This document shows positions 1 to 29,876 of a DNA stretch of 64,000 bases, piece by piece. The DNA lies in NCBI RefSeq assembly GCF_016432865.1, contig NC_067402.1, positions 292,888,001 to 292,952,000 on the forward strand, written 5' to 3'. Every line of letters starts with the position of its first letter. The first letter of the stretch is position 1. Source of the stretch: Antechinus flavipes (taxonomy: Eukaryota). Both the position numbers and the translations under genes were made by a program. The notes beneath the pieces were generated by a model. It saw only the letters and a program-made list of their open reading frames with translations, did not search any database and was not told the DNA's origin.

Positions 1-1898
1 CTGCTCCCATGCTAACCCAGGCTGGGTCTCCCCATCCCCAGAGGCTCCCCGGGACTCTATGGCAAAACGCACAGCACCAACTCCCCTTTTAAACCTGCTG
101 GGCTGCGCCCGCCTGCGGCGGCCACACCAGCCCGAGCTGCTGCCTCACTGCGCCCAGACCCTCGCCCCCCGTCCTGCAGTCCAAGCAAGACCACCGCCAC
201 GGGCAAAGGCTTCAGGAGACGCAGCTTTAGGGACGATTCTCCCAGACCCCAAGAAGGGGAACTCGTGGCCACTCCCCCCCTTGGTCCTCAGACCTTCCTC
301 GCGAAGATGGGAAGACGGAGCGGAAGCCATCCTGGCCATGGGGCCAGCTTCCAAGCCAGCTCTCATACCGGCCTAGAGAAGCCCACTTCCCTAGACCTCC
401 ATGCCCTCATCTGTAAAATGGGTTCCTCAGAGGTGCAGGCCAGAGCCCGGCAGCCTCAGTTTCCCTTCTCCCCTTGTGCTCTCTAGCCTGGCCTGTCCCT
501 TTGGCAGCCTGCCATCCACCCCCGGGCAGAAAGCAGCAGGGCCGGGGCCGCTGCTCGGGTGCTGGCTTCCCACCCTGCCCCCGGTTCCCTCTGCCAGGGG
601 AGGAGGCTGGGCTCCATGAGCTCCCCCTCTGAAAGGCCTTTCCCAAGAAGCAACCCAGGCCCCCGCTGGCTCTGGCCCGCCAGCCTCCCCCGGATAATCC
701 GGCACGGGGTGCCCACGGGGGTCCGAGGTTGGGGCTCCTTCTGGGTCTTTCAACTCTAACGGGGCTGCCCCCACGGCCTGGCCCAGAACCCGGGGCATCG
801 GTCCGTGTCAGGGAAGGCACCGAGCCCGTGTGCCCGAGGCCAGACCCAGACCTTGGTTCTCCAGGCCTGTTCAGAGTCTGCTGCTGGAATGGGGGGGTTG
901 GGGAGAGAACAGGGTGGTCCCGGAGGGCTCCTCTGACTCCGGGGCCCGTCCCCCGTGGCCAGGCGTCCCCCAGAGACGGCCAAGGGGAGGAGGAGCACAC
1001 CGAGCGGCCGGGGGCACCCCCAGAACTCAGGCCTTGGCCAGCGCCACCTCAGCACGCCGCAGCCTCCAGCCCGGGAGGGGGCCTCGTGTCCAGGGCGCAC
1101 TTATTAAGTGTCTAGTGTATGCCGGGCGCTGGGGTCAACCTTGGGGCACGTGGAAAGGCCCGGAGAGGTTCAGCGCGGGGAAACGGAGGAGATCAGCAGG
1201 GGGGAGGCCAAGGAGCAGCATTTAGGGGGTGCCTGCTGCATGCTGGCCACCACCCTCCTCCTCGCGGCTGACCTGCCCGCTCCCCCCGCCAGGCAGGGTC
1301 CGAGGCCTCTCCTTTCCGGCTGCTGGGGGCTCTCCGGGCTCCTACCTGGGTCGGGGGCTTCTCGTCCGGACCCTCAGCAGCGAGCCGGGTTCTGGGGTGA
1401 GGGCAGCAGGAGGGGCTGACCTGCAGGGCGCGGGAGGGAACGAGGAAGTGAGGGGAGAGGGGAGAAGGGACTGGGGGAGGATGAGAAGGAGAAGGAAGTG
1501 GGGGAGGGGGGAGGAGGAGCGGAAGGGGGAGGAGGAAAGGGGGAACTAAGTGGGGGGGAAGGGGGAGGAGCTGGGGGGAGGGGAGGCCGGGTCTCGGCCT
1601 GGTCTCGGCCCGGCCCGGGGGGACAGGGGGAAACCCTCTCCGGCGGGACGCGACCCGGAGCACGGCACGTGGGGGGTTTGTGGTAGAGGGGCCGCCCCAA
1701 CTCGCCCCCTCCCCCACGAGGCTCCAGGGAGCTCCCCCAGCCCTAGCGAGAAAGCCGCAAGGAAGGCTGGCCGTCCGGCCCCGAGAGCTTCTAAGAGACA
1801 GCACCCCCGCGCGCTGCTCGGACAGCACCTGCACCTGCACCGCCCCCTCCCCCGAGACTCGGACCCGGTCGGGCTCCGCCACCCGGCAGCTCCCTCAC

Positions 1899-2030
1899 CT
1901 CGGTCGCTCGCTAGCTTGCTCGCTCCTGTCCGTCGCACGGGAGGGAGCAGGGGGGAGCGCGGGACCGCAGGGCACGCTGGGAAGAGGAGTCCCGGCCTCC
2001 TGTCCTTCCCCCCGCGGCCGCCCTGGACCT
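1899..2030 (-). other. Putative non-coding first exon of a leftward gene (TRABD expected from human synteny, no coding sequence in window)
   Basis: Minus-strand donor GAG|GTGAGG at 1899/1898 in the CpG island. In human, TRABD follows PANX2 in the same orientation and has a non-coding first exon. 5' end approximate; identity is inference only. Confidence 0.45.
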
Positions 2031-2037
2031 CGGAGAG

Positions 2038-2055
2038 GGGACTACAACTCCCAGG
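2038..2055 (+). promoter_or_regulatory. ZNF143/THAP11 (SBS, ACTACAnnTCCCA) motif
   Basis: GGGACTACAACTCCCAGG matches the ACTACAnnTCCCAG consensus, a motif known to be enriched at bidirectional promoters. Confidence 0.75.
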
Positions 2056-2099
2056 GGGTAGCGCGCCACCCGGTGCCTGAGAGCATGCGTGTCGACGCC

Positions 2100-2288
2100 G
2101 TCCGGCCTCGCGAAGGGGCGGGGTTCGGCGGCAGAGGGAAGGGGAAGGAAAGGGGAGGAGAGGAGAGGGAGGGTGAGGGGGAAGGGAAAGAGGAGGAGGA
2201 AGGGGAGGAGGAGGAGGAGGGAAAGTAAAGCCGGGGAGTTTGGGGAGGAGGAGCTCCTGGAGGCAGTCTGGAGGAGGGCGGGGATAGG
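2100..2288 (+). other. Putative non-coding + strand first exon (candidate 5' UTR exon of the tetraspanin gene)
   Basis: Donor AGG|GTAAGC at 2288/2289; no ATG in 2090-2288; start approximate. Confidence 0.4.
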
Positions 2289-2817
2289 GTAAGCCCCTCC
2301 TCCACGCCGGCCCCCTACGAGCGCAGTTCGGAATCCTTTTTGCAACAGTTGAGGCAGGTCAAAAGGGACGAGACTTGCTCAGGGTCCTGCAGCCAGTAAC
2401 AGTCTCCGCCCCCAGAGCGCTCCCTCCTCCGCCCCTCGCTGCTCTTTCCGCGCCGCCAGGTGGCCCGCGGCCCCCCACTCTGCTGGGGCCCCTCACCCCC
2501 TCCGCTGCCGAAACGGCGGCTCCTGCAGCGCCCCCAGGCGGGGGCCTTAGGGACCCCCACGGGAGGGGGAGGGGAGGACCCGCTGGGGAAGGGCAGGAAC
2601 GTGGCAGCAAAGGGCCGGGGTCCTGCTCCGCGTGCTGCCGGCCGCTGCCCCGGCGCTGCAAGGGGACCGGCCGAGGGAAGATCGGCTCTCTCCCATTGGC
2701 GCACGGGGCAGCCTGAGGCTCAGGAGAGCAGCAGCGTCTAACCGTGGGGGCGGCCGGAGGAGCCGGCGTGGGGGGCGGCCCGAGCAGCCTGGGAGACCTC
2801 CCCGCTTAGGGCCTCCA

Positions 2818-2975
2818 CTCCCCGGCAGGGGCTCCCGGCCTCCAGTCCTGCAGGAGTTAGGGATGCTCCTGGGGGAGTCTCCCCCTCCCCCCTCCCCGGC
2901 AGGGGCTCCCAGCCTCCAGTCCTAGAGGAGTTAGGGATGCTCCGAGGGGGAGTCTCCCCCTCCCCACTCCCCGGG
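2818..2975. repeat. ~74-bp tandem duplication (about 2.1 copies)
   Basis: CTCCCCGGCAGGGGCTCCC(G/A)GCCTCCAGTCCT..GGAGTTAGGGATGCTCC..GGGGGAGTCTCCCCCTCCCC starts at 2818 and 2892, partial at 2967. Confidence 0.9.
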
Positions 2976-3164
2976 TTCCGACACAGGCGCCCCTCCCAGA
3001 CAAGGCTCCGGATCCTCTCAGGAATCATGGCCCGGGCAGCCAAGGAAGCAGGGAAAGTGAGAGATGGGGGCGGGGACAGACAGTGAAGAAGCGGGGATCA
3101 GGGGCAGGCACAGAATATAAAGTCCACCAGCAGCTGCTCCAGAACCGGGGTCAAACTCCCCAAG

Positions 3165-3525: not shown

Positions 3526-3984
3526 TCCTCTGGGGGGCAGTGAGGAATGCTACCTCTCTGGCACAGTTCTCTCACATTTGGGAAGTCTCTCCCCCGCAGC
3601 CTAGAGCTCCTGACATGCTTCTTCCCCCATTTCCTTCATTCTCTCCCCCCCTCCCCCGAATCCTGCAGAACAAGCTGAGCCTCTTTCTGGCCTCCGGAGG
3701 TGAGGAGGGCCGGAAGGTGGGGGGAGGTGGGGGAGGACGGAAGGAGCTGGATCGGGACTGGCTCTCCCTCGGCCCAGGGCCCCACCTCTGGCCAGCCCCC
3801 AGCCCAGCCCCTCCACTTGCCTGCATTTATCCCTTGCTGCCCATGACAGGCCCTGCCTGCCCCGGGACTGGTAGAAGGAAGACAGGGCCAGTGGCCAGGG
3901 GGCCCCTGAGAGTGGGGGACGGCGTGGGGGCTGGGACACCGAGGGTCCCGAGGTTTGGGGGGGGGGCTTGTGAGCCCGGGGACC

Positions 3985-4761
3985 ATGGCGCTCTTGAAGC
4001 TCTCCGTGCTGGCATTCAGCTTCGTGTTCGGGGCGGCCGGCCTAACGATGCTGACCCTCGGGCTGTGGGCCGAGATGGCTCTGGGAAGGTACCTGGTCCT
4101 GTCCGCCCGAGGGGCCCCCAGCGCCCCCTCCCTCCTGCTCGCCGCGGGGGCCGCCGGGCTGCTCTGGGGGGGTCTGGCTGGCGGCGGGGCGGCCAGCGGG
4201 CACCGGGGCCTGCTCCGGGCATCTGCAGCCATCCAGCTGACCGCCCTGGGAGCCGGCCTGGCTGCCGGCCTCTCGGGACTGTGCTACCGGAGCGAGCTGG
4301 CCCAGGGCTTCCGGGCAGGCCTGTGGCAGGCGCTGTGGGGCTACGGGGCCGGAGGGAGGGGAGATGCCAGCTTGGACGCCCTGCAGCGGGGCCTGGGCTG
4401 CTGCGGGGTGGACACTTATCGCGACTGGCTGGACTCCCCCTGGGCCCGAAGCCCCCGGGCCCCGGGGAATGGCTCTCTGCCCCCCAGCTGCTGCCAAGGC
4501 CAGGCTGACTGCCAGGAGGGGGCCAGGGCCGTGGCTTCCGATGGCTGCTTCTCCAAAGCCAGCGACTTTGTGGCCGACAACATGGACTTCATCGTGGTGG
4601 CGGCGCTGGGCCTGGGGGCCCTGCAGGTGGTAGGAGTCGTGCTGGCCTGCCTCCTGGCTGCCCGAATGGCCCCTGGCACCCAGGCCTCTGTGGAGACCCC
4701 AAAGAGACGGTCCCTGAAGACCCCGATCCCCGACGTCCCCGCTGCCCCCCTGGAGCCCTGA
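3985..4761 (+). CDS. Intronless tetraspanin, TSPAN6/TSPAN7-like (258 aa), probable retrogene
   Basis: Strong Kozak GACCATGG at 3985; four hydrophobic segments; large loop with CCG (4399-4407), YRDW, PPSCC, C and GC (six-Cys type); colinear by eye with TSPAN7/TSPAN6 (SFVF..G...L.LGLW...LG.Y, QR.L.CCGV..Y.DW, GCF.K, NM, LQ..G..LAC.L); no introns, stops or frameshifts. Confidence 0.88.
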   Translation: MALLKLSVLAFSFVFGAAGLTMLTLGLWAEMALGRYLVLSARGAPSAPSLLLAAGAAGLLWGGLAGGGAASGHRGLLRASAAIQLTALGAGLAAGLSGLCYRSELAQGFRAGLWQALWGYGAGGRGDASLDALQRGLGCCGVDTYRDWLDSPWARSPRAPGNGSLPPSCCQGQADCQEGARAVASDGCFSKASDFVADNMDFIVVAALGLGALQVVGVVLACLLAARMAPGTQASVETPKRRSLKTPIPDVPAAPLEP

Positions 4762-7289
4762 GCCCCCGCCCCCACCCCCATTCCCCCCTCTCTCCAGGCT
4801 GGGCCCCGTCTCCTCATCTCACCCAGGAAATAGCCCTCACAGCCTCGCCCCTGAGCCCAGCAGGTGCTTCTTCGGCCCCCCAAAGAACTGTTCCTTTCCC
4901 CCCCTGCCCCTGAGGGACAACAGCTGGGGATCCTAGTGAGCCGGGCCTGGACCCTGGGACCCTGGAGACGGCTGCCCCAGATCTGGCTCTGGATGAGTGG
5001 CTGGGGGTGAGGAAGGTCTGGATTGTGGCAGGGGAGGCCAGAGCTGGGGGCAAGGACCCCCCTGGGGCCCTGAGAGTCCATAGCGACGGCAGGTTGTTGG
5101 GGAGAGCAGCACCGGGGCCTGGAGAGAGCCGCAGGCAGGGCTGCAAAAGCCTCCAAGGCCCAGCTTTGCAGGACGCCCGGGGGGGGGGGGAGTTTTGTGC
5201 CCTTCCTCTTTGCTGGTTCTGTCACCTCCCCCTCCTCCCAGGCCTGTATTTATGGGCCAGCCTAGAGCGCGGGGCCCTAAGCTGTGTGTCCATGAGGCTT
5301 CCAAACTCAGGGGTCACCATTGCCCTCCCACCGCCAAAGCCGGGGGGCCCCAGCAGGGAGCTCTGACCTCGGCTCCTTCGGCTGTGGGGCGGGCGTGAGA
5401 GTCCTCCAGTGACCCTCCCTGCTCCACAGGGCCCCGATCCCTGCAGATGCTCGAGAGAAAACCCAGGATCCTCCAGTCGGTGACTCAGGAATGGCCCTGG
5501 ACTCCTGGCCAGAGACACTGAAGGACGCTTTCTGTCATGTCTCAGATGAACGGGCCGCCATGGACCCCTCGCCCGGCCCTTCTCCTCTGGTTCTCCCCCT
5601 TTATGCCCTGTTCCCCCAGCAGCCCTGGTGCCCGGCACAGGGGGCAGGGAAGGGGCTGCCAAGCGGCATCTGGCTGTGTTCCCTATTCTCATCAACCACA
5701 GGTTTCTAGCTCTTGATTTTATAGGATTCGACCTTGGAGCTGGAAAGACTCAGGGCTCTTAAAGGCATCTCTGTACCTCATTACATAGATGGGGAAACTG
5801 AGGATCCAAGGGGGCAAGGGTCTTGTGTAACATCAGGGATGAAGTCACAGCTCAGAGCCAAGGATATTTAGAAGTCATGGGGGCCGGAGAGATGGAGTCC
5901 TGCCATGTGCCCATTCTGTGGATGAAAAAGCAAGGTGGAGAGGGTGCAAGTAACTTGTCCACTAGTGTCAGGACTGGGTCTGGAGCTAAGTCTTTGGGCT
6001 TGAAGCCCTCCTTCCACTTCCTGTTTTAGTCATCAGCCAGTTGGGATGTCTGCATCTCCAATGATGTAGTAGCAGCGGAGAGACTGAGAATCCCAGCATC
6101 CATCCCTGTCAGGAAATCGCTCCTGGTTCCAGCCCCCCAGGGGACCAAGCGGAATAAGGCTGAGCCCCTTCCCCCAGGCACAGGACCCGGGTTTGAGTGC
6201 CCCCCCCCGTGATTATTTCCTGCTGGGGGGACCCTGAGACAAATGTTTCCTCACGTGCAAAACGGGGATCATACATTTGCAGTCCCTCTCTCAGGAGCTA
6301 GTAAAAGTGTGGCTTAAAGTGCATGAGGGCAGGATGGGAATATTCCCCCAAGTGCCCGCCCTTCAAGGGTTAAAGGCCGAAGGAAGCTTGCCTGCCCCCA
6401 GCCCCAGGACCGTTTTTCTGTGGGTCTGAATCTCTGCCAGGACTATCAGCACTGTTGGCCCAGCTCTGGTGTTTCCAAGGAGGGCAGCTCTCAGCTTGGT
6501 TCTTTATCTGCAATTTGGGGATAATGTTTATAATCTCTATCTTGTTATGACGCTCAATGTTAAGGAAAGTGCTTTTTAAACCTTAAAGCACTCTATTATC
6601 AGCCATGGCAATGATAATGTTATCGCCCTGGATTATCATGGCTTCCGCCCTCAGTTTACCACTGTGCTGGATGGTAATCTCCCTGAAGGCAGGAACCCTG
6701 TTTTTTCTAGGACCTGGGGGGCCCTTCTTATTCAAGACAATCCATTTACCGAGATAGAATGAGAAAAACCGGAACTCCGGTCATCTGGTCCAAGTCATGG
6801 CTCATTCCCATTCTCCTTTGCAGCCTCAGTTGGGACTCCCCAGGGGAGCAGAAGCCAGCGAGGCTCCCTCAAGAACGCCTTTTGGGCAGGGCTAGGAACC
6901 TGGTAGATCCAGGATTCTTAGAATTCAGCAAAGCAAACTGTGTCTGCTGATAGGAAGTACTTGATAAATATATGATAAATTATTAACAAATATAATTAAT
7001 AAATATATGATAAATCCCAGGATCCCGATCGCTTTATTGGAAACTCGTGGAATGGTCACCCTCAAAGACGAACAGTCTCAGGGTGTTTTGGAGGGGTCTC
7101 CAATGGTGGCTCCTCCAATAATTCCTGCTCCTAATCTATTCCTGTCTGGATCAACATTTTTATCAAAGAGTTGGAGAAAACAAATGATAAGGACAAAAGT
7201 TAACATACGCCCGGCATAATCCTAAGAGCTTTGCCAGTATGCTCTTGTTTTAAAGGCATATTTTAAATACTCTCATCCACGATGAAAGT

Positions 7290-11639: not shown

Positions 11640-12001
11640 CTAAAACTCCACAGTACTCACAACTGTCCGGGGCTCCTCAAAGGTGGCAATGAGAATCTGC
11701 TTGGGGGGAGGGATGGTGATGAGGTCGGCCATGTCAGGGGAGGCTCGCGGCGGGGCCTCCTCCTCCTCCTCCGCCCGGTGGTCCTCATACAAGGTATTGA
11801 TGTGCAGCAGGGGGTGGGTGGAGTTGTGGCTCAAGACAGCTATAGATTCAGGCTTCCCAAGGCCAGGGGTGACACTGGCTGGGGGCCCCGGGACCCCGGT
11901 AGTTGTGGTAGGTGGGCAGCTATGGAAGGATCCCGGAGGGGGTGCCATGGCCCGGCACGGTTCCACTGGGTACAGGATTTCTTTTTCTGGGCCTGGGGGA
12001 T
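11640..12001 (-). CDS. PANX2: Pannexin 2, coding exon 3
   Basis: Acceptor TTTTCAG|ATCCCC at 12002/12001; encodes DPPGPEKEILYP...HPLLHINTLYE...QILIATFEEPRTVVSTVEF*, matching the PANX2 C-terminus. Confidence 0.96.
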
Positions 12002-13989
12002 CTGAAAACAGGATCAAAAACACCAAACTGTCTCTTTCTTCTTTCAGACCATGGATTCCTCCTCCCCAGCCCCCCAAATGTCGTATAGAGTAGACTGGTG
12101 AGTTTGACCCCAAGTGCCCAGGGGACAAACCCTATATCAGTGTCAGGTATCTGGCACTCAGTGCCATGGCCTGGGGCTCCCTGCTTAGAAAGGCCCACCC
12201 TGAGCTCAGCTTTGCGGATGCATGTTTGGAGCCACTTGTGAAGGGACTGTGGACCTTGGGTGATCTTGGAACATGGGATGAAAGAACGGGGGAAGGGAGT
12301 GCTGGGAAGGACACCTGGAAGCGGCGGCCATAGCAGAAGAAAAAGGCCCAGAGCTCAGGGAATCGGGAAGATCCCGGAGGTTAGCTCCAGGCCCAATGGT
12401 TGGACCTTAGTGAGGGCCGGGGAGGCCCACAAAGTTGTGAGGTGTGAAAATCATGGGGCCAAAGTCAAAGGGTCTGGGGATGTCTCCTGGGCTGAGCAGC
12501 TGGCCAGTGGATCTGGGTCAGTCATGAACAACGGCCAGGGAGCAGCCCGTCACTGGCCCAAGGGATGATTATTCATGGCTTCAGAAGGCCGAGAAAGGCC
12601 CCAGACACCACCGCCTAGAAGGAATCTTAGAGACCGTCCATTTTAATCTCCTAACTTTACAGATGAGGAAACTGAGGTCTAAAGAGATTTGATGAAAAAC
12701 CAGCTTTTCTCATTTCTGGATCCAACCCTCTTTCCTCTACACTGGGCAGCCACCAGGCAGGCTCTGAACAAAAATGGTGGACAAACCTATGAGAGAAACG
12801 GAGTCCTCCCGGAAAGTAGTAAGGCTGATATTATACAACCCAGCATAAAGAGCTTCTGGTCTGATGCTTCGGGGTCCCTTCCAGTCAACTCCTGAACAAT
12901 GGGGTCTCTGCTAGAGCCTATGCATGACCCAGGACCCCAGAGATATGTCCCTGCGGGGGCTGAGGCTCAAAACAACTACACACTCATCTTGCCTTTGAGT
13001 CAGCTGGTCCGAAGGAAGGGAGCCTTGGGTTCCACGCTCCTGCAGTGGGTCTGGCAAAGGCTTCCCCAGCCTGGATTCGTTTAGGTGGCAGAAGAGCATA
13101 TCTGAGCTGGTCCTTGGTTACTGGGTGATGAGAGGAGCCCTATTCTACCTGGCTGGGCCGGCCGCTGAGCAGCAGGATGGCTTACACAGGCTGCCTCCTT
13201 CCTCCAGCCGGACACTCTCGGGGGTCTCTCTCAGACTGACGGCAGGACTCTGCATCAGAGCCGTAACTAGCAAAGTGGGTGGCCAGAGCAAGCTTTGTGA
13301 GCTTAAAGACAAACTTGGGAGGAGGGGGGAGGTGGCGTTCTTGCTCAGTCTTTGTGACCCCTTGGACCACTGGCCCTTCTGTCCTCCACTGTCTCCCAAA
13401 GTCTGTCCAAGCTCGTGTTCATCACTTCCACGACAAGCTCTCTCCGTCTCATCCTCTGCCATCCCCTTCTCCTTTTGCCTTCCATCACCCAAATATCAGG
13501 GTCTTTTCCAATGAGCCCTTCCAATGCAGGGTGGTGAAGGGGAAGCCATGCTGAGAGACGTGGGCTGCGATTCCACTTCAGATACTTACTAGGAGTCTAA
13601 CTCTGGGCAAGTCCTTTCCCGGTTCTGAGCCACAGTACCATCATCTATATAATGGGGATAATAAGAGCCAGAGAACTTACCTAACAGAGTTATTGTAATC
13701 TGTAAGAGCTTTGTAAGCCTTAAAAAGCCATGAAAACATCGGGACTGTTACGCTTGAAGAGGACCCCATTTCTGGCTCTTCTCTTTCAGCTAAACATCCC
13801 CAGTGTTTTCAAGCAATCTTCATTTCGCTTGGTTGCTCCCCAGCCTTCTCCCCATCCCGGCTGCCCTAATCTAAACAGTCTATGGCAGAACTGTCCAACT
13901 CTTAGCTGGGGTCTCCATATGGCTCCCCCAAAACTCCCTAAATCAGATGAAAATGTTATTGAAAAACTAACAAAATTAACAACATAAAT

Positions 13990-16900
13990 AATGCGAATTT
14001 GTAGTTTTCTAAGCCAATATGCACTTGTTTCCAAAGCACTCTTTATGGAACCCTGAGTTCTAGAGATACAATATTCCAGATGTGGTCAGATCAGAACCGT
14101 ACCTTTGTTATTCCTGAATACCTCCTTTGGGCATCCAAAGATCACACTATGTGAGGGAGACTAAGGGACACCATAGCACACTGCTGTTCCACTAGACCTC
14201 TGAGAACTTTTTCACAAAAAATGCATTACACTTTACAAAAGTGAATGGTGAAAATTATCTCTGCATGTATTTGGAAAAATAAAATACTATTAAAAAAAGA
14301 AATGCTGAGTAGCTATATTTCACCAATCCTGTACATATGTTGGTGAGAGTTTGAGCATGTATGGTCAACTTTATACCCTTCTCCCTATTAAATTTCATTT
14401 TATTGGGATCGCTAGATGGCACAATGGATAGAGTACCAGCCCTCCAAATCTGATCTCAGACACTTAATACTTTTCAGCTGTGTGACCCTGGGCAAGTCAC
14501 TTAACCCCAATTGTCTCAGCAAATATATATATTTATTATTATTATTAGACTGAGTCTCTCATTCTAGTATATCAAAAAATTTAAACCACGACCCTATGAT
14601 TCTAAATCATATCTCTTCCCTCCAGACTTCACATTGTATGTATATGATCTATGTCTATATTAAAGTCATGGGTAATCATTTTAGATTGGACAGGACAAGT
14701 ACAGAGTCCCCTGGGAGACTCCACTAGAGGCTTCCATCCAATATAATTCATTCATGACTCCTTTTTGGATTCAGGCATCCAATGAGTTCTGAATCTATCT
14801 ATCCGGACTACCATTTAGCTGAGCATTTCTCCATCTTGTCCAAGGAGGGAATGAATCTTGGTCAAATGTTTTGCTGAAATCTAGTTAAGGTTGATCTAAA
14901 GTATTTCTCCAATTGACTAGTCCATTAACCCCACCAGAATAGGAATTGAGGATGTATGGATGAAGTAAGGCTGGCTCTCAGTTAATTGGCTTAATAGCTG
15001 AAGAAACCATCTTTTCCCCCTTTATGAAAATTAGGATGGCATTTGCCCTTCTCCAGGATCTTTTCCATTCTCCATATTTTCCCACAAATCACCAAGAGCT
15101 GTTTAGCAATTATATTTCTCTCTTATTATAACCCCTCGTATGTAACTTCTCTGGGCTTAGTAAAGGCATCTCTAAGTGCATCTTGTTTTTAATTGATTGT
15201 TGTTCGGTTTTGCTTTTCTATTGCTTGTCAGAAAATCTTTTTTTTGGTAGAGAAGACAGAATTAAAGAATTAGATTGTTCTTCCTTTCCTCCACTGCCTC
15301 CTTTGATCATTACCCAATCCACCTTGAGCAATGCTCCTATCCTTTCTTCGATCTTCTTTCCATCCCTCACACTGGAAAACCCTCTTTGTTATCGTAGCTT
15401 TCTCTGCTGGTCTTCATTCTTCTGGTTGTTAGCCCTCTGCTGCTGCCTTTTGATATCTGTCTTCATTTATGGCCTTCTTCCACTTTTTGTACACTGTCTT
15501 TTTCAAATACGAGTTGGCCAATGTTTCCTAAATTCATATTAGTAAGTTGAGGGAACTTCTCCCTTTATTCGTAATTGGGTTCCTTTGTGTTTGTGTTGTT
15601 GGAATATTATACTTTAGAAGAACATCACATTCATTTCAGTCAACTTCCTTGGAGGATTTTAGGCCACGAGTTTCTGGCTATCTTTCTTATAAAGTCTTTG
15701 AAATCCACTTTCTGAAAATCTCAGATGCAGCTTTCTTTCCCCTACTCATCTAGTCCAAACTTGAAAATGGAGTTCTCCTTCCAAGGTTCCCATCATTCTA
15801 TTTCAGCTTGTTCATCTTTACTGCTCAGAATTAACTCGAGAGTAGCTGTTCCTCTTGGTCACATCCTCTACCAAGAATCCAGGATTGTCAAAGCTCAATT
15901 GAGAAGTTAGTAGCATGACTTTGGCAGAGTGAGCACCGGAGTCCCAGATGTCTCAGAGAGTTGAGGTCTCTCTGGCTAGCTTCTGGATCACTTTCTAGAA
16001 CTTATCTTTTGTTGTGGTGGATTATAGCCACAAGATCACTTCTGATCACTTCCCTTTAACAAAACTTCTCTCCGATGCTCCTCCATCTCCATCAATCTTC
16101 ATGACTCTCTTTACATGAATATTCTTCCCATGAGCCCTCCTCTATTTCTCCTTTCTTGGTTTCTCTTCTTCTTTCCATAATTTCCATATTTCTGCCATGA
16201 CTGATCTCCCATATCGCAGAGCTTCTTTGGAGGCTGATTGTGCCTCCTTTTTCAGTTCACTTGCTATTTATTTTTCCACACTGATTTCTGGACTTCCTGA
16301 GGCCATGGAACTTAGTGGTGGCTCTCTTCCTGGATACATCCCCTGTGAATTACTGTTCTCTCCAGTAATAGCTGCTTTTAGTCTCCATGGTCTCCAGCTT
16401 GGCAAATTTATATGGGTCGGTTTCCCCCCTTCCATTTTCAGTTTAAAACCCTTTGGATTCAATCTGAAAATCTCTAAAGAAATTAATTTTAATGTTCCTC
16501 ATGAGATTTACTTTACTCCCGCCAAAGAGCCTATCATTCCAATGTGTTCCATAAATCCAAATTTACACTCTAACAGTGGATCACTCTTTCAATAAGATTC
16601 CACTTGCAACCAGGAGCAGTAAAGAAAACCTTACTTTTCCCTCCTAAGATCTTTAGTTTCTCTCTTAGAATTTTCTCTTCCTCAGCAATGCTTTCTAGGG
16701 ATATTATCTGTCCTCACATAACTCACCAAGAGTGTCTGATGGTCACCAGGCTTGGAAAACATTAGGAAAGGGTCACATTCAGAGTACAGGCTCTGGGATG
16801 GAGTATGTCTCTTGACTGTTCCATTCCCAAAGATTCACTAGTGATCACTATCAAGCACCACCAGTTGTGTCTGTCCAGTCCTGAATGATAGCTTCCTGGT

Positions 16901-17450
16901 GGTACTTGTGTACTCACAGTATTACTTCTTGGCGATCACATCTTCCTCTTCGGAGCTCCAGCTTCATCCTCTTCGGAATGATACTCATGTTTGTTACCTT
17001 GCTCCAAAGAGTCCCATGATCCTCCTCTTTCCTCTTTGTGTTGCTATCTTCCACTCTCTTATCCAGGTAAGGATTCCTCAAGAATCAAAGGACCCAAGCT
17101 GCAGAACTCAGTGTCCACAGAAGCCAGCCTCCTTTTTCTTTCTTCCTGTGGAACTCTTATGTTAAGAAACACTTCATTCTCTTTAATAAACTGGAAAGTA
17201 AAAGCCCATTCCTCTATTCCCTCCATCTCCTTCTTTAGGAGGAAGGCACATTCGTGTTAACCACCACTAACAGAAGCACAAACTCACCAGAAACCATCCT
17301 TGTTGGCAGTCAAGGTCTCAGTTCTCCCATAGGCTTGCACACAGTAGGAACTTAATAGATAGTTTTTGTCTGGTTTACTAATAAGGCTATTTCAGGGAAC
17401 CACCTGGTAGTTGGTCCACCCTGCCTCCTGCTACAGACTTAGAAATATTT
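13990..17450 (-). mobile_element. Long L3/CR1 LINE ORF2 remnant in PANX2 intron 2, with nested SINE/L1 fragments
   Basis: Minus strand reads LDFSKTFD (14858-14884) and a PIF.KG-like motif (~15020-15050), with degenerate ORF2-like sequence continuing to ~17.4 kb; many stops; boundaries approximate. Confidence 0.7.
14405..14525 (+). mobile_element. Marsupial tRNA-derived SINE (WSINE/Mar-type), internally deleted
   Basis: GCTAGATGGCACAATGGATAGAGTACCAG...CTCAGACACTTAATACTT...GTGTGACCCTGGGCAAGTCACTTAACCCCAATTG. Confidence 0.8.
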
Positions 17451-17894
17451 TCTGGGTTATTTGTCATGTACCACTAGAGCTCTGATGGCCATAATAACTG
17501 CCTAAGGAAGGAAGGTCTCTGATGTTTTAATTATACAGAAGTGAGGTTTCTAGCACTTCTTCCCCTTTCTTTTCTCTTTTTTTGTTTTGTCCCTTGGTCA
17601 AATATTAGAGAAACTCCCTACATCTTTCTCCTTCTCTTATCTTTAGGTTAAAGCAACATCCTCATCACTCCCTGACATAGTGTTACCGATTGTGCCCTGA
17701 ATGAATTTTGAACTCCCAAATAAGCGAATGAGGATTTTTGGATTCTCTGTTTATCTGGTTGATAGAGAAGGTTGGGTCCACTTCAAAAGAAAAAGGATTG
17801 TCCTATCTTATTTGCCAAGTATCCTCAAAGAATATGCTGTCTCCCTTCAATAAACTTTCAACCAGGGTTACTCCTTCTTTTAAATGTATAAAAA

Positions 17895-18055
17895 TGGGAG
17901 CAGCTAGATGGTGCAGTGAATAGAGCACCAACCCTGAAGTCAGGAGGACCTGAGTTCAAATCTGGCCTCAGACACTTAACACTTCTTAGGTGTATGACCC
18001 TGAGCAAGTCACTTCACCCCAATTGCCTCAGCAAAAATAAAAACAAAGTATAAAA
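17895..18055 (+). mobile_element. Marsupial SINE (WSINE1/Mar-type)
   Basis: A box, B box GAGTTCAAATC, CTCAGACACTTAACAC core, A-rich tail. Confidence 0.85.
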
Positions 18056-18743
18056 AATGCTTATTGACCTCTCTGAGTGGAACTCTTTCTCCCACATCTC
18101 CTGTGTGGGTCCCCCTGCCTTCTCAGGGTACAGGCTACTGAAAGCAAACTCCCCACCTCCCAAGGCCCCTAGAGTGATGGCAGGTGAGCACTCATCACTG
18201 TAGCATCACTCAGAGATGCTCAGAAGGGCCCTGGTCTCTGGAATACCCCACTCTGTAAAGCTTTTACCACCTTGTTCCTTCCCAGGTTTTTTTTAGCTGC
18301 TGTCCATGGTTCTACCTAGAGCAGACCACTTTCCCTTGCCAGTGGGTGGAAAATAAAGCTAAAGTAAATTTAAAAATTACCCTAATCCTAGCTTCAAGGC
18401 AGTAAACTGATTTTAAGCATCGAAATTTTCGGCCCTTTTTAAGGCTCGGGTGGGAGTCTGAGAGGGGTTTCCTGCCTCTGCTCCCGAATAAAGCCCACAG
18501 CCTTTTTTTTCTGGCAGATCCACGGCCCCATTCTTTACTTCTAGGATCATGGCTGAGTTCTGAAGGCCGGGGCCTCTCCATGTCTAGGAGAGGAGATTAT
18601 TCTATAATTTTTTTTTAAATTATGGATTTAATGGAGGGGGGCGGTATGATCTGCTGCTTTCGGTTCTCCTTGGCTTCCCGCTCCCCTGTCCATCCTCCTT
18701 GAGTCAACCTCACTGCGGCCCACCCCCTTCCCCACCTTCCTAC

Positions 18744-20189
18744 CTTTGGCAGGCGCCATGCGGGTCCCTCTGCAGTCCTCCCCCTGGGTGAGGAAGGCAC
18801 CCTCTTGGCTCTTGGAGGCGGGCAGGGCGGCAATGGGCGGCAGCTCTGGTTTAGGCTTCTTGCTGCTGAGGATGTAGGGATGGACGTCCAAGGAGAAATG
18901 TCTGGCGTGTTTCTTCTCGCCGCTGGCGGACGGGGGCGCGGAGGAGGGGCCGGGGTCTCCGGCCCCGGCCCCTTTGTGGTGGGCGGCTCGGGCATCCAGC
19001 AGCGGCGCGATGAGCGTGTCCGTGGCCGTCTTCCTCCTCACCGGTTTGGGTTTGTCCGCCTTGTGGTTCTCCACCTTCATGATGGCCAGCTGCTCCTTGA
19101 AGGGCTGGGGCAGGGGGTTGCTGGTGGGGATCCACTTCATCTTTTTGCGGGGGCGCTTGACGACGGGGGGCTCCCCCGAGTCGCCTTCGGCGGGGTTGGC
19201 GCTGGGGTCCACCGTCTGAATGCCCGAGTCTCGGACCGTGGGGGTGGCGTCGTGGTTGGACTGGGCCAGGGCGGCCAGCAGCTGTCGCACCACGTTGTCG
19301 TACATGAGGTCGCTCTCGTTGGTGATGAAGTCGAGCCGGTTGAGCGACTTGATGTGGTCCCGGTTCTCGTTGCAGAACATGGCCAGGATGTTGATGTCGC
19401 AGAACTGGGAGCGGCGCCACTGGCGGCGGGTGCGGATGCCCACCTTGTGCAGCTTGTCGAAGATGAAGTTGCTCTTTCGGAAGATGAAGAGGTGGATGAG
19501 GTTGACGAGGATGATGAGGTTCATGAAGCAGAGGAGGACGATGTCCACGCCGGCGATGATCCTCTGCAGCTGCACCGAGGGCAGCTTGCAGCTGACGCGC
19601 ACCGAGCCCCGGGGGCCGTCGGGAGGCTCGCCCAGCGCGCACGTGAACTCGTTCTGCTTCTGCGTGGCGTAGTAGGTGCACAGGTAGCTGATGGGGACGA
19701 CGCTCAGGAGGAGGATGAGCACGTGCCGGGCGAGGTAGAGCTTGGCCAGAAAGTTGCTGCGGCCCCGGCGCTCCAGGTACTTCTCGAACAGGTTCTGCTC
19801 GGGGCTCTTCTCCTTTTCGGCGTTCTCGATGATCTCCCGCTTCTCCCTCTCCGTGATGCCGGGGCCCTTGGACTGGATCTGCTTCTCGATCTTGGGGGCC
19901 CGGCCCTCCGCAGCCCGATGGTAGCAATTGTCAATCTCCTGGAGAAGGAAGTTGAGCTCGGAGGTGAGGCGGGTGGAGGCCAGGAACTCCCAGCCCAGGG
20001 CGGGGACGTACATGATGCCGGCAAAAGCCAGCAGGGCATAGGGCAGGAACTTGTGCTCGAAGAGGGAGGGCCAGTGGCTGGAGTCCACCCCGGGCAGGGC
20101 GTCCCTAAGCTCTGTCCAACAGTAGCCACGTGCATAGAGGGCCTGGTCACGGGTGAAGTTGTGAGGGGTATAGCAGTAGATGGGTTCCT
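18744..20189 (-). CDS. PANX2: Pannexin 2, coding exon 2 (1446 bp)
   Basis: Acceptor CCCTCCAG|AGGAACCC at 20190/20189, donor AAAG|GTAGGA at 18744/18743; EEPIYCYTPHNFTRDQALYARGYCW...CKLPSVQLQRIIAG...FCDINILAMFCNENRDHIKSLNRLDF is PANX2. Confidence 0.98.
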
Positions 20190-21689
20190 CTGGAGGGCAG
20201 AGAGGAGAGACACGGCTCAGGGTCATGGCAGGGATGGGGAAGGGTCCACAGTGCTCATCCCTCCTGGCAAAGGGAGGACACAGATTGGGGTGGGCACTGA
20301 AAAAAACATTCACCCACTATTGATGTCCAACAAGGGGGCAGAGCCTTTTCCTGTATCCCCATCCCCCCTGTCCCTGGGGTTTAAGAGCATACGTGAACTG
20401 GCAGGGCAGACCTTGGTTGGGGACAGAAGGAACCTGAGTGGCAAGGCTGTACACCGGCTGGGAGCCTGTCCTCCCATACTTCCCCTGCTTCTTCCAGAAG
20501 GTACATGATTTCAACTCTAAAAGACCCAGGATCATTTCCTAAAATGATCTCCTATCAAAAGAGGAATTCCTCATATTCAGGAAGTTTCCAGAATGAGGAT
20601 ATAAAGTTGGCAGGTACTTCTGAGATCACGTCATCTAATTTTACATATTTATGTAAATAAGTATATTTACATATAATCGTTTTACAGATGAAGGTACTGA
20701 CGTCTACAGGGGTGTAGCTTTGCCCCCAGGTCACATGGACAATGGGAGAGGAACAGAGCACTGAAAGGGGAGTCAGGAGACTTCAGATCCCAGTTCTGAT
20801 ACCTATGAATGACCTTGAGTCTATCACTCAGAGCCTGTCTGCACATCTGTAAAATGTGGAGGACAGATGACTTATAAGGTCTCTTTCAGTTCTAGTTGTA
20901 AGAACCTTTGCTCCTAACCAGCCTACCTAGCCAAGTCTAAGGTCTCTTCCAGTTCTAGATGTAGGAACCTTTGATCCTAACCAGCCTAACCAGTTAATCT
21001 GAACCAATCTACGTTTTTTAAAAATAATTTTTACCCATGGTCATGGACTCCAAAGCCAATGCCCCTTCCTTGACATTAGGTCAGTGCTAAAGATACATAC
21101 TATTTTCCCCAAATATTGTATCTCACAGAGTTCTGTGTGAGAGATAGTGGAAGATGGGCTGAAGAAATGGAGAAGGGGAAATGTCCTGATTTTCAAAAAA
21201 AGGGAGTGGGTAGAATCTATGAATGATAAATTAGGGGAGCCTGATTTTGATGTGGGACAAAATTCTAGAGCACAGCATTAAAAGGATGTTAATTGAATAT
21301 TTGGAAATGCAAGCAGTGGCCACATAGTATCAGCATTACTCACTAAGAACAAGTCACACAAAACCAATCTCGCTTCCTTTTTGGGGGGCAGGATTACTGG
21401 ACTAGTAGATTGGGTAAATGCCACAGACACAGTTAATTGAGATTTCAGCAATCTTTGACTTGACACAATCTTTCATGTTATCATGGACAAAATGAAAAAA
21501 AAAAAACCATCTAGGGTAAATGAAGCATAATGAGGAGCATTTGTTACTCGTCGATCGGCTAGGCTTTATGTCAGTTCACGAGGAGGTCTTCAACAGGATG
21601 CCCTAACGATCTGGATTTAGATCTGTGCTAGTTCCGGTGGAAACGTGCGATGGACATCCAGAGAGAGAGAGCTGAGAAGACTGAATGTG

Positions 21690-21960
21690 GTTAGAAACAT
21701 GGTATGCTCAACTTTTTTTGTTTGTGTTTTTCCCCTTTTGGTCTGACTTTTCTTGCACAACATGATGAATATGGAAATATATTGGGAAGGATTGCACATG
21801 TTTAATTTATATCAGATTGCTTACTGTCTTGGGGAAGGGGAAGGTGAGAGGTGGGAGAGGGATTTGGAGCACAGGGTCTTGCAGGAATGAATGTTGAAAA
21901 ACATTTTTACATGTATATGGAAGGATAAAATACTATTGAGGAAAAAATAAATCTGTGCTA
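21690..21960 (+). mobile_element. Marsupial L1 3' UTR fragment
   Basis: TTTTCCCCTTTTGGTCTGACTTTTCTTGCACAACATGATGAATATGG...G-rich tract...AATGAATGTTGAAAA...AATAAA. Confidence 0.7.
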
Positions 21961-22126
21961 TTATTGACTTGTTTTTTTGGTCAATGACTTGTATAAAGGG
22001 ATAGAAGTCCATATATGATACATATCTCAGAGGTACAGCTAACATACTAGATAGCAGTCAGAATTTTAAAAAATGTCTTGATAGGTTAGAAAATTGGGCT
22101 CAAAAGTAAAAAAAAAAAAAAAACAA

Positions 22127-22275
22127 CGGGGAAGCTAGATGGACAGTGGATAGAGGACTGGCCCAAGAATCAGGAGGACCCGAGTTCAAACTCATCTTCA
22201 GACACTTAATACTTGCTAGCTGTATGATCTCAGGCAAGTTACTGAACCCCAATTGCCTTACAAAAAAGAAGAATA
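22127..22275 (+). mobile_element. Marsupial SINE
   Basis: GGGAAGCTAGATGGACAGTGGATAGAGGAC...GAGTTCAAAC...CAGACACTTAATAC...CCCAATTGCC. Confidence 0.8.
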
Positions 22276-23439
22276 ATTTCAAATTATTGGTTTCAAAGAC
22301 ATCAGCTTCATAGGCACAAGATGGGGAAGGGTAGTTTGTTCAGCAGTCCAGATGAAAAAAAGATCGAGAGCATTTAGGGAGCTATCAACTGCATATAAGT
22401 CATTACTATGACATGGCAGTGGGAGACCTGGTGTGACCTTGGGAAGCTTGCAGAATATCAGCCCCAACCAGACCCTATCTGTTGTACTATGTGTATAGTC
22501 TGGGGTACCACTTCTGAGGAAAGACACCAATACATTTTCCAATTGGATGATGATGTCCTATAAGGCTAGACTGAAGGAACGCAGAGAAGAGAATACACAA
22601 GGAGGATATGATCAGTTTTGAATGGATGTCAGGGAAAAGAGGCTCAGGGCTTTGTCCTAGTTGGCCTTGGGGAGCAGGACTAGGAAGAATGGGTGGAAAT
22701 TGCTAAGAAATAAATCAAATCTGGATGGAAAGAAGGACTTTCCTACAGGAAGGAGAGCTGTCCCAGAGTGGTGGGCTGCCTTGGAGGAAGGCTTGCAAGA
22801 TGTGTTCCAACAGAAGATCATTTCTGGAGGTAGCGTGGGATGCTTTTACTGGTAGGCAGGGCCTGGATCAGAACACCTCTCACAACCCTTTTGGATCTAA
22901 GCTTCTATGAATCTACCATTATCAAGGAAGTTGAGGAAACTGAAGTCCAGGGAATTACAGTGATTCATCCAAGCCAATGAGAGAGCCTAGATTGAAATCC
23001 CAGCTCTCTCTCCTAGTCCAGGTGGGTAAGGGGAGAAAAGATCCTGTGAACCAAACAGGGGATGGTTCTCTAAACATTGGGGTTTAGAAAGGGTTGCTCC
23101 CCAGCTAGTCAACTCTCAAAATTGCTCTGTTCTATCTAGCTAGAAGCAGAATGTGAAGACCAGAACAGAGATGATTCTTAGAACCAAGTGGAACCTAACT
23201 CTGCCTGCCTAACACTGGAACATCCTCTGCTTCTGTTAGCGAATCCCCTTGGGGCTGGCTTCATTGGTGACTTAAGCAGCTGAGATTGGAGAGCAAGTCA
23301 GCCTGCTGTGGGGTGGGGCTCCTGGGGTAATGAGCAGAGCCCCATGCTGGAAGCTGGAAAAGCTGGACTCTGCCTTTGCTGTGGGATTCAGCCAAAACTC
23401 TCTGGACTTTAGCTTGTTTGTTTGTTTTTGCTTTTGTTT

Positions 23440-23820
23440 TAATTTTTGATAATAGATTTTTATTTTCAAAATATATGCAAAGATTATTTTCAACATTCAC
23501 CCTTGCAAAATCTTGTGTTCCACATTTTTTCTCTCTCCACCTCCTCCCCTGAACAGCAAGTAGTCCAATATAGGTTAAACATGTGCAATTCTTCTATACA
23601 TATTTCCACAATGATCATGTTGCATAAGAAAAACTAGATGAAAAAGGCGGGGAAATGAGAAAGGAAAAAAAAAGCAAACAAACAACAAAAAAGGTGAAAA
23701 TACTATTTTATGATCTACATCAGTCCCCATGGTTCTTTTTCTGGATGCTGATGACTTTCCCCATCACATCTTTTGGAATTGGCCCGAATCACCTCATTGT
23801 TGAAAAGCTTCTTCATTTGT
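23440..23820 (-). mobile_element. Marsupial L1 3' UTR fragment
   Basis: Reverse complement of the same L1 3' end type (TTTCAACATTCACCCTTGCAAAATCTTGTGTTCC...). Confidence 0.7.
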
Positions 23821-23869
23821 AAAGTGAATAAATTGTATTAGACCATCTCTAAAGTACCTCGCACTCAAG

Positions 23870-24101
23870 AGTGTATTGGAGCCAACTGGTACTGGCTCCC
23901 AAGAATTGATCGTTAAAATTTTAATGTGAGCATTTATGCCTCAGAAATTGGAAAACTCTAAAAATCAGTTCTTAATTTACTGCTTTGATGACTGTCTAAA
24001 CTTAGGACAATGACAGAAAAATGTTAATAATGCAGATTAAATTTACAAATGTGTCATGAGCAAATGTTTTTCTTGGAGAGCCAGTTGTTAAACATTTACC
24101 A
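23870..24101. mobile_element. Non-autonomous hAT DNA transposon (Blackjack/MER63-like)
   Basis: GTGTATTGGAGCCAACTGGTACTGGCTC...GAAATTGGAAAACTCTAAAAATCAG...GAGAGCCAGTTGTTAAACATTTACCA resembles the recalled MER63-type consensus ends; family name tentative. Confidence 0.55.
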
Positions 24102-25509
24102 CAATTTTTCATTTTCCAATTCAGAAGCCTCCTCAGACTGTCTCAGGAAGCTAGAAGAGGGAAGGAAACTGGCGGGGGGGGAGAGGGGAGACTAAGGATC
24201 ATCCCTTCAGCACAGCTCAAGATCTTCCCCATTTAACACCATCTTAAATCTGAATGGGGATACTTGGTCCTTTTTCTCAGAAAGAGAATGTGAACTTACT
24301 CTATCAGTACCAACTTTGCTCTGGGAACCTGCCTTCCAAAGACAGGCAATTCTCAAGTATCCATCCCAGATGCATAACAGAAAAATAAAAGCGGACCCCC
24401 TAAATTGTCTGCTCGCTTTTGGAATCCAAGTAATGCCTTTGGATCCAGTTATTCTGTTGACCAATACTTGCTGTGTTGTGGCCCTGTGCCAGGCGTGGCT
24501 GTGTGTGGGAAACAGGGCTGAATGGGGCCCACCTTTGGAGGGTGGACCCACCTGGATGATTGAGTCAAGCCTGGGGTTCTCATAACTTGACTTCCAAGGC
24601 AGGTTGGAGGCATGTAGGCAATGAGGAAGCAAGTAAGGGTTGGGGATACTCAGAAGGGGAACTGAGGTACAAGCCATCTTCACCCCACTGCCCCCTACCC
24701 TTGGACCCTTTTGGGCTAGAAACAGAAGGTTTTCTTTGATATACAGCTTGTTTTTTCAAGTATTTAACAAACACATCACTTTTTTAAGATTTATTTTACT
24801 AATTCAACACATTAGTTCCCCCACTGCACCATTAGAAAAGAAAAACAAAATCTGTGTAACAAACATGACAAACAAAACAAATTCTTGCTTTAGCCTTGTC
24901 CAATAGTTGTATGTTGAAGGATTTCTTTAAGCTAAAGATTCATTGCTGTACTGATAGCCACAAGACACTAGAAATCCAGAAGTCCTCTGCCTCTACAGAG
25001 GGTTGATGGGAGGGCCAGAATGGCCATCGGGGGCAGCCTGCGTTAGCAGAGGGAGCTCTTACAGGATGAGGTCATGGAACCACTCAGTATAGATATACCA
25101 ACATATGGTGTGGGATCCCCACCTCCCCCTCTCACAGTGCTCAGCCCTGTCTTCAAGGAGCTTACAGCAAGAGGGAGACGTGAGTCACACATAGATGATT
25201 CAGAACACAGAGGATGCCCAGAAATCGGATGAAAGGACTCTTACTTTAAGGGCCAGATCAGAGAGGGCTTCCTGAGGAAGGGGGACCACCAAAGGTCCCT
25301 AAGCAGGTGACTGATAAGATTAGGGATGTATCTATCAGACAGATTTTAGCGACACTGGTGGGCAGAGATTGGAGGCCTGCCAACCTATGAGGAAGAGAGA
25401 CCAGACAAGAAATGAATAGGGTGTGAATAAGTGAGTTCATGAATATGAAGGAGAGAATCAAAGTGCCATTCAATTCAGAAACATTCATTTATTAAGGGCC
25501 TGCTATGTA

Positions 25510-25700
25510 CAGGCAGGTAGGATGGAGTGACAAGTCTGGAGTCAGGAAGACTCTAAGCAAGTCATTTAACCTTTTGTGCCTCAGTTTCCTTACCTGTAAA
25601 ATAAACTGTAGAAGGAAAGAGCAAATCCCTCCATTATCCTTGCCAAGGAAACCCCCAAAAGGGGTCCCAAGGAATCGGACATAAGCAACTAAACCGCAAC
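25510..25700 (+). mobile_element. MAR1-type CORE-SINE
   Basis: MIR core CCTCAGTTTCCTTACCTGTAAAAT plus MAR tail GAAGGAAAGAGCAAATCCCTCCATTATCCTTGCCAAGGAAACCCC. Confidence 0.7.
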
Positions 25701-26034
25701 ACTGTACTAGTTAGCGGGGCACAAAGACAAGTGATAGATAGATGCACTCAAGGTGCATAATCTGTAGAAACAGACATGGTGTAAATAGAATTGAAAAAAT
25801 TAAATAAGTGAATGTTTGCAGTTGCTGGATGGCTAGTGAGCTGAATGTCCTGTTGAGACCAGGGCTCCCCCTGGGCAGGACTATGTCTCCTCATCCTGTT
25901 TCCTTGAATGTGGGATTGGTCCACAAAAGTCTTCTGACAGAGAAGAAAAGATGGGGGAACTCTTTGATGATTGAGTTCACTTCCTGCCTTGCCCCAAATA
26001 GTCACTATCCTATCTCCCAAATTAAAAAAAAATG

Positions 26035-26150
26035 GTTAGGGGGGCAGTTAGGAGGCACAGTGGATAGAGAACTAAAGTCAGGAGGACCTGAGTTCAAATC
26101 TGTGTAACTCTGGGCAAGTCACTTAAACCCCCCCTCCCCCGCCAAAAGAA
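26035..26150 (+). mobile_element. Marsupial SINE, truncated
   Basis: GGGGCAGTTAGGAGGCACAGTGGATAGAG...GAGTTCAAATC...GGGCAAGTCACTTAA. Confidence 0.75.
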
Positions 26151-27989: not shown

Positions 27990-28760
27990 AGCAAGGAAAA
28001 AAATGAACAGATGTACAGATTACCAAACAAAGTAGAGAAGATACAAGAAGATAAAAGAGACAATTTTGATTATATGAAATTAAAAAGATGTTGCATAAAA
28101 TCATTTCAGTTGAAACTAACCTTTGCAGCAGGTTTCTCTGATAAGATCTTATTTTCAAGATGTAGGGAGGACTGAGTTTAATGTATAAGACTAAAAGCTA
28201 TTCTCTAGTTGATCAGAGGATATGAAAAAGTAGCTTATCAGAGGAAGAAATCTAAACAAGAAATAACCATATAAAATGCTCCAAATATTACTAATAATTA
28301 GAGAAATGAAAATTAAAGTAACTCTGGAATTCTACTTTATATCCATCAGATTGGCAAAGATGACAAAAAAGAAATGACAAAAGTCGGAGGGGTTACAGAA
28401 AAACAGGCACTCTAATGCATTGTTGATGGAGTTGCAAATTAATTGGTCCAATTATTTGGAAAAGCAATTTGGATCTATTTCTCCCAAAATCACTAAATTG
28501 GGCTTATCCTTTGATCCAGTAATATCATCACTACTTTGCCTCACAGAATTCAAGAAAGAAGGAAAAGGACTTGTATGCACAAAATATTTATAGCAGCAAA
28601 CAACAACTGTTTTTAAAGGAAAACAACTCGGAAAGACTTTGAGACAACATCAGTGCAATGTCAAGTCACTGTTCAAGAATCCCAAAGATGAAGCATGCTA
28701 CCAACCTCTAATAGAGAGGGAGACATACAGAAGGAAACGGGTTTTTGAACAATTCAGGAT
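27990..28760 (+). mobile_element. Old L1 ORF2 C-terminal fragment
   Basis: Degenerate FAA.FSDK.LI.K.Y.EL...YK.KS.S..D region and downstream L1 motifs. Confidence 0.7.
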
Positions 28761-28899
28761 TTGCTTTGTTTGACTATGCCCATCAGAAGGTTTATTTTTT
28801 AAATGGCGAGTGAGGGGAAGATGGGAGAGAGACCAAAAATAAGATATGTTAAATGAAAAAGGAAAATACTTTGTAAACTAGATAACACCTGGGTATTAC

Positions 28900-29700: not shown

Positions 29701-29750
29701 AAGGGGAATCCCTCCATGTCCTTAGCTCTTTTATATTCTGAGTGAGTGGC

Positions 29751-29832
29751 GTGTGTATGTGTGTGTGTGTGTGTGTGTATGTGTGTGTGTGTGTGTGTGT
29801 GTGTTTATAATATATATATTACAGCAGTTGGG

Positions 29833-29874
<42 letters not shown>
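29751..29874. repeat. Inverted microsatellite pair (GT)~27 - 30-bp spacer - (AC)20
   Basis: GT tract 29751-29804 (two GTAT interruptions), TA-containing spacer 29805-29834, AC tract 29835-29874. Confidence 0.95.

Positions 29875-29876
<2 letters not shown>

Follow-up and report, generated by a model that had tools for sequence, protein, structure and literature searches.

An intronless marsupial tetraspanin, very probably an orthologue of the ancient vertebrate 'TSPAN6-like' lineage

Here, we analysed a stretch of 64,000 nucleotides of the Antechinus flavipes genome (contig NC_067402.1; hereafter, the window) that contains a single-exon tetraspanin gene between TRABD and PANX2. Very probably, this gene is orthologous to an ancient vertebrate tetraspanin without introns, named 'TSPAN6-like' or 'tetraspanin-7-like', which most likely arose by a single retroposition; marsupials have kept it under selection. 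The outcome is mainly corrective, in that an apparently young retrogene turns out to be an old vertebrate gene, and its value as a discovery is small: the family has already been published and the orthologues of five other marsupials are already annotated in RefSeq. What the analysis adds to the 2010 description of the family is the membership of elephant shark and lamprey, the retention of the gene by marsupials at the TRABD-PANX2 locus, and a seemingly GC-biased change along the marsupial stem.

The tetraspanin reading frame and its predicted product

The reading frame encodes 258 amino acids on the forward strand, with its stop codon at 4759-4761 (Table 1). The start codon lies in a consensus Kozak context, and in the family alignments the initial methionine lines up with the conserved start, MxxLK, of all orthologues. 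The protein matches the Pfam family Tetraspanin (PF00335) with an E-value of 2.2e-29 and 103.2 bits, the curated cut-off being 32.1 bits, and the match runs from residue 4 to residue 225, covering profile positions 1-223 of 225. Hydropathy indicates four hydrophobic segments, and an AlphaFold2 model built from a 43-sequence alignment (mean pLDDT 83.7) places helices at residues 2-37, 46-71, 74-119 and 188-227. The top fold matches of this model in the PDB are all tetraspanins (CD53, PRPH2/ROM1, TSPAN15, CD9, CD81 and uroplakin), and the best sequence relative in the same database is TSPAN7 (9w2b; E = 1.4e-32). The large loop carries the motifs CCG (residues 139-141), D147-W148, P166-P-S-C169-C170, C176 and G187-C188, all of them invariant in the family alignments; this arrangement reads as the tetraspanin 6-cys-a type, CCG--[DN][WY]--PXXCC--C--GC, and agrees with what Huang et al. 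2010 list for the TSPAN6 lineage. A glycosylation sequon, N162-G-S164, likewise occupies invariant columns within the loop. The C-terminal tail is proline-rich and ends in PLEP.

Table 1. Features of the window and the evidence on which each was placed
Feature	Position in window	Strand	Evidence
Homologue of the first exon of the Sarcophilus TRABD gene model	1..366	-	Alignment to the Sarcophilus locus (L003)
GC-rich, CpG-enriched stretch (GC 0.68-0.74, CpG observed/expected 0.54-0.65), candidate shared promoter	1501..3000		Composition; TRABD and tetraspanin head-to-head
Kozak start context, ACCATGG	3982..3988	+	Direct reading
CDS of the marsupial 'TSPAN6-like' / 'tetraspanin-7-like' orthologue	3985..4761	+	ORF, Pfam, identities, tree, dN/dS
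Variable part of the large loop with six cysteines and NGS sequon	4399..4548	+	Invariant columns in two alignments
First AATAAA downstream of the stop codon, candidate polyadenylation signal	6998..7003	+	Pattern scan
PANX2, coding exons 31842-31612, 20247-18745 and 12008-11643	11643..31842	-	Innexin match on the large exon; tblastn exon map

An open frame by itself says little here: the DNA is rich in GC (72%; GC3 0.85), and other frames contain overlapping ORFs of 269-329 aa that arise by chance. The ORF is nevertheless considered real because it matches the family and is conserved across species; judged by its sequence, it is a genuine, intact and functional-looking tetraspanin gene. No A-rich tail follows the stop codon and no remnant of a poly(A) tract or target-site duplication is visible, as would be expected if the founding event predates the vertebrate radiation. 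The initial annotation had described an intact, intronless 258-aa frame with a strong Kozak context, four transmembrane segments and all six loop cysteines, free of visible poly(A) or target-site-duplication remnants and situated between PANX2 and the 5' end of TRABD. Each of these observations is borne out, the first ones by the ORF reading, the Pfam match, the hydropathy profile and the structural model, and the location by the minus-strand exons of PANX2 and the mapped start of the TRABD model.

By analogy with the rest of the family, the product would span the membrane four times and serve as a scaffold, gathering partner membrane proteins into microdomains, with a large extracellular loop presumably locked by three disulfides and glycosylated at the conserved NGS site. 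Its sorting and its partners probably differ from those of TSPAN6 and TSPAN7, because the cytoplasmic tail ending in YEMV, with which the retrieved TSPAN6 and TSPAN7 sequences terminate, is missing from the window protein. That the marsupial product has a function at all is suggested by the constraint on its sequence.

Relatives across vertebrates and the origin of the lineage

A protein search with the window ORF returned 81 matches, and nearly all the non-marsupial ones bear the name 'tetraspanin-7-like'. The closest relatives are the marsupial orthologues, from Sarcophilus (95% identity), Gracilinanus (90%), Vombatus (88%), Macrotis (87%) and koala (87%), followed at 47-59% identity by orthologues from birds, lizards, snakes, turtles, alligator, caecilian, frogs, coelacanth, sturgeon and elephant shark. 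When cluster representatives were searched exhaustively, teleost members and one from a lamprey, Lampetra planeri, came to light as well. By contrast, identity to true TSPAN6 (from snakes) and TSPAN7 (from turkey and medaka) is only 26-31%; the vertebrate TSPAN6/7 representatives were selected via their YEMV tails and then named. A second large protein search had a chelicerate query (P0094) and contributed invertebrate outgroups only. Neither the search with the window ORF nor that of the cluster representatives yielded a protein from a eutherian or a monotreme; judging from this absence of annotated proteins, eutherians appear to lack the lineage and monotremes possibly do so too, which would imply that it was lost among mammals outside the marsupials.

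TSPAN6 and TSPAN7 are multi-exon genes. In the lineage of the window gene, the gene span equals the CDS length for every orthologue whose span could be read, that is, in a lizard (738 bp), two birds (717 bp), a mackerel (1089 bp) and a caecilian (750 bp), as well as in Sarcophilus, Gracilinanus, Vombatus and Macrotis. Given that the single exon is common to lizard, birds, mackerel, caecilian and marsupials, intronlessness is ancestral to the lineage and is not a marsupial event.

Maximum likelihood trees computed under LG+C20+F+G4 unite the window protein with its five marsupial counterparts in a clade with 100/100 support, and this clade is nested within a second 100/100 clade that comprises all 'like' proteins, including those of shark and lamprey. 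Vertebrate TSPAN6 and TSPAN7 constitute a separate 100/100 clade, with the window protein outside it. A tree constrained to group the marsupial proteins with TSPAN6/7 is worse by 79 log-likelihood units, and the AU test rejects it (p = 1e-6). The 'like' clade as a whole joins a long hemichordate branch, a join flagged as one where long branches meet, so its position relative to TSPAN6/7 is unreliable. TSPAN6 and TSPAN7 are the nearest canonical tetraspanins, with a loop cysteine pattern in common and a similar length, but they differ from the window protein in their tail, in their low identity to it and in forming a clade of their own.

The presence of a Lampetra planeri member implies that the lineage predates the split between lampreys and jawed vertebrates, and, since elephant shark and lamprey both are members, its origin is to be placed at or before the vertebrate ancestor and not within bony vertebrates. 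The lamprey protein (P0086) matches the family up to the middle of the large loop and continues into unrelated sequence, and its model is probably frameshifted or mis-spliced beyond that point. Several other gene models also deviate from the common form. Models from teleosts, sturgeon and several frogs (P0241, P0060, P0058, P0042, P0050 and P0054) begin with some 100 additional N-terminal residues, which in mackerel are encoded within the single exon (locus L004, 10001-11089); amniote proteins are without them, and no alignment was found between the frog and teleost extensions. The Sarcophilus RefSeq model is 309 aa long and starts 51 codons upstream of the conserved methionine (L003 10001-10153, corresponding to window 3844-3984). 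The matching ATG of the window (at about 3844) lies in a different frame from the tetraspanin ORF, so that the extension is probably an annotation artefact.

Huang et al. 2010 (BMC Evol Biol 10:306, PMC2965184) described the lineage itself under the name 'TSPAN6-like' and regarded it as a divergent, retrotransposition-derived tetraspanin of bony vertebrates; with the use of synteny data, it was classed as a small-scale duplicate, and its PAML one-ratio omega was given as 0.040. The reference set of that study includes TSPAN6-like sequences of chicken, Xenopus and zebrafish and holds no such entry for human or mouse; marsupials are absent from the data set, and neither 'opossum' nor 'Monodelphis' occurs in the supplements. 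The published chicken, Xenopus and zebrafish sequences have the same opening and loop motifs as the bird, frog and fish matches found here. The window protein shares with this lineage its 100/100 monophyly, the single exon, the 6-cys-a loop, the NGS sequon and the lack of a YEMV tail, whereas the marsupial members stand apart by a long branch, an enrichment in glycine and alanine and a proline-rich tail. A zebrafish gene named 'tspan7b' in a paper on egg quality (PMC6631549) was set aside, its membership of the TSPAN6-like lineage not being established. Another intronless vertebrate tetraspanin is TSPAN10 (oculospanin), reported to be without introns by Garcia-Espana et al. 2009 (PMC2650405); it differs, however, in being of the 8-cysteine type and of an unrelated lineage, and its loop matches the window protein only weakly and partially (E = 8.6e-4).

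Constraint and change in marsupials, and the competing explanations

Compared with Sarcophilus, the CDS is 96% identical with no gap columns, whereas the flanks have diverged further, to 78% identity with 86 gap columns over 585 bp upstream and to 88% with 59 gap columns over about 940 bp downstream. The 31 differences within the 777 bp of the CDS are distributed 6/5/20 over the three codon positions and comprise 19 synonymous and 12 non-synonymous changes, which for this one species pair yields a dN/dS of 0.24; under neutrality, so few non-synonymous changes (at most 12 of the 31) would occur with a binomial probability of 1.2e-4. Furthermore, the frame is intact and of similar length in six marsupials, an American didelphid included, with protein identities of 87-95%. 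By these measures of sequence, the gene is maintained by purifying selection in marsupials.

This conservation was preceded by extensive change. In the ML trees, the marsupial stem branch measures 0.83-0.86 substitutions per site, compared with 0.004-0.09 for branches within marsupials, with the caveat that the marsupial sequences deviate in composition, which can distort branch lengths. Under commonly accepted divergence dates, the stem would, as a rough estimate, have evolved about three-fold faster than the sauropsid lineages. Among 108 near-invariant columns, defined as those identical in at least 15 of the 16 orthologues from outside the marsupials, 79 are retained by every marsupial and 19 are altered in all of them. 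The replacements are largely to glycine or alanine (W16G, Y44A, V58G, F63G, C66G, Y80S, D123G and A211G), and these two residues make up 32.5% of the window protein versus 19% of the lizard protein. The history of the gene would thus include a long stem shift towards glycine and alanine, followed by renewed conservation across marsupials. Such a shift is consistent with substitution pressure towards GC in a region that is very rich in it, and an adaptive component is conceivable. A more far-reaching possibility is that marsupials alone among mammals kept a tetraspanin some 500 million years old, and that the stem burst, in which otherwise invariant residues of membrane helices were exchanged (W16G, F63G, C66G and Y80S) before constraint set in again, marks a change of partner or function specific to marsupials and not a mere by-product of GC-biased gene conversion; we consider this combined proposal doubtful.

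The initial annotation had proposed the gene as a candidate marsupial-specific retrocopy of TSPAN6 (X-linked) or of TSPAN7, possibly, if TSPAN6 was the parent, an out-of-X copy that compensates for meiotic sex-chromosome inactivation. An intact gene without introns, the lack of eutherian and monotreme proteins among the matches and motifs that look like a mixture of TSPAN6 and TSPAN7 would all suit such an event, but we accord it next to no probability, given that orthologues from lamprey and shark to birds are far closer to the window protein than TSPAN6/7 are, that the marsupial proteins nest within the 'like' clade to the exclusion of a grouping with TSPAN6/7, that the single exon is common to lizard, birds, teleost and caecilian, and that the lineage has been in print since 2010. 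Of the proposed TSPAN6/7 affinity, what survives is relatedness, with TSPAN7 as the best PDB match; descent from within the TSPAN6+TSPAN7 clade does not, and neither does marsupial specificity. Because the gene is old in vertebrates, the story of escape from the X and of meiotic sex-chromosome inactivation is inapplicable. An amniote orthologue had indeed already been published; beyond marsupials, synteny is seen as far as the presence of the gene and PANX2 on the same chromosome-scale contig. The suggestion of purifying selection, on the other hand, agrees with the single pairwise dN/dS, which indicates constraint and is not near 1, and with the absence of indels from the CDS relative to Sarcophilus.

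It could also be argued that the frame is a non-functional relic, preserved by chance or decaying in GC-rich DNA where stop codons are rare. The base composition and the overlapping chance ORFs lend themselves to this view, as do the long marsupial stem and the replacement, mostly by glycine or alanine, of 19 of the 108 near-invariant residues, W16G, F63G and C66G among them. Against it stand the excess of third-position and synonymous differences, the complete lack of indels in a CDS whose flanks contain 145 gap columns in total, the frame that stays open in six marsupials, the retention of all six loop cysteines together with 79 of the 108 near-invariant columns, and a confidently modelled fold, which together render a relic very improbable. 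A different origin for the lineage as a whole is less remote, if still unlikely, namely, that it is a paralogue of TSPAN6/7 from whole-genome duplication, or an older duplicate, that was later stripped of all its introns. The 'like' clade does fall outside vertebrate TSPAN6+TSPAN7 in the trees, the lamprey member makes the lineage about as old as the early vertebrate duplications, and there is no trace of poly(A) or target-site duplication; however, genes seldom lose all of their introns, whereas a single retroposition would account for the absence of every one, Huang et al. 2010 (PMC2965184) class the lineage as a retrotransposed small-scale duplicate, and the deep placement in the tree is subject to long-branch attraction. 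Retroposition is suggested here by the intronless state, which complete intron loss would mimic. The scenario that we favour, an ancient intronless gene retained by marsupials, would most likely involve a single retroposition of a TSPAN6/7-type ancestor before the lamprey/jawed-vertebrate split, with vertical inheritance of the lineage ever since.

The TRABD-tetraspanin-PANX2 locus

The window is collinear with a locus of Sarcophilus harrisii (L003) at about 87-89% identity in non-coding DNA (blastn), and the genes called in that locus are TRABD (PF01963, minus strand), the tetraspanin (plus strand) and PANX2 (PF00876, minus strand). Window positions 16-493 align with L003 6879-7327, the TRABD range ends at L003 7195, and the ATG of the Sarcophilus TRABD model maps to window position 366 on the minus strand. 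From the Sarcophilus gene order and this mapping, the tetraspanin lies head-to-head with TRABD and tail-to-tail with PANX2. The window PANX2 is 98% identical to that of Gracilinanus. The same arrangement of the three genes is found in Macrotis, and in Gracilinanus and Vombatus PANX2 follows 8.5-9 kb downstream of the tetraspanin on the minus strand.

Beyond marsupials, the longest contigs reported for the gene and for PANX2 are equal in length, which indicates one chromosome-scale contig for both, in Apus, Rhineura, Podarcis lilfordi, Microcaecilia, Rhinophrynus, Discoglossus, Pelobates and Lithobates. PANX2 exons were not found within 10 kb of the tetraspanin in a lizard and two birds, and these 10-kb flanks share no sequence with the window except the tetraspanin itself. 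The neighbours differ at the mackerel locus, where they are CCDC53, a TINF2_N/zinc-finger gene and a SWAP70-like gene.

Several smaller features of the locus deserve mention. The predicted N-terminus of the Sarcophilus TRABD model, which has 462 aa compared with 374 aa for the Macrotis product, keeps its frame in the window for only about 18 codons, and the first 'coding' exon of that model (L003 6800-7195) may really be 5' UTR. Purine-rich low-complexity repeats of the GGA/GAG type occupy window positions 1450-1556 and 2133-2225, in the CpG-enriched stretch. About 460 bp upstream of the tetraspanin ATG, at 3193-3524, sits a minisatellite with a 34-bp unit in about nine copies (80% matches; also scored with a 79-bp period), which the collinear blastn blocks with Sarcophilus (window 2939-3169 and 3510-5655) skip, so that it may represent a lineage-specific expansion. 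Far downstream of the tetraspanin, a run of 128 N at 42632-42759 marks an assembly gap or mask.
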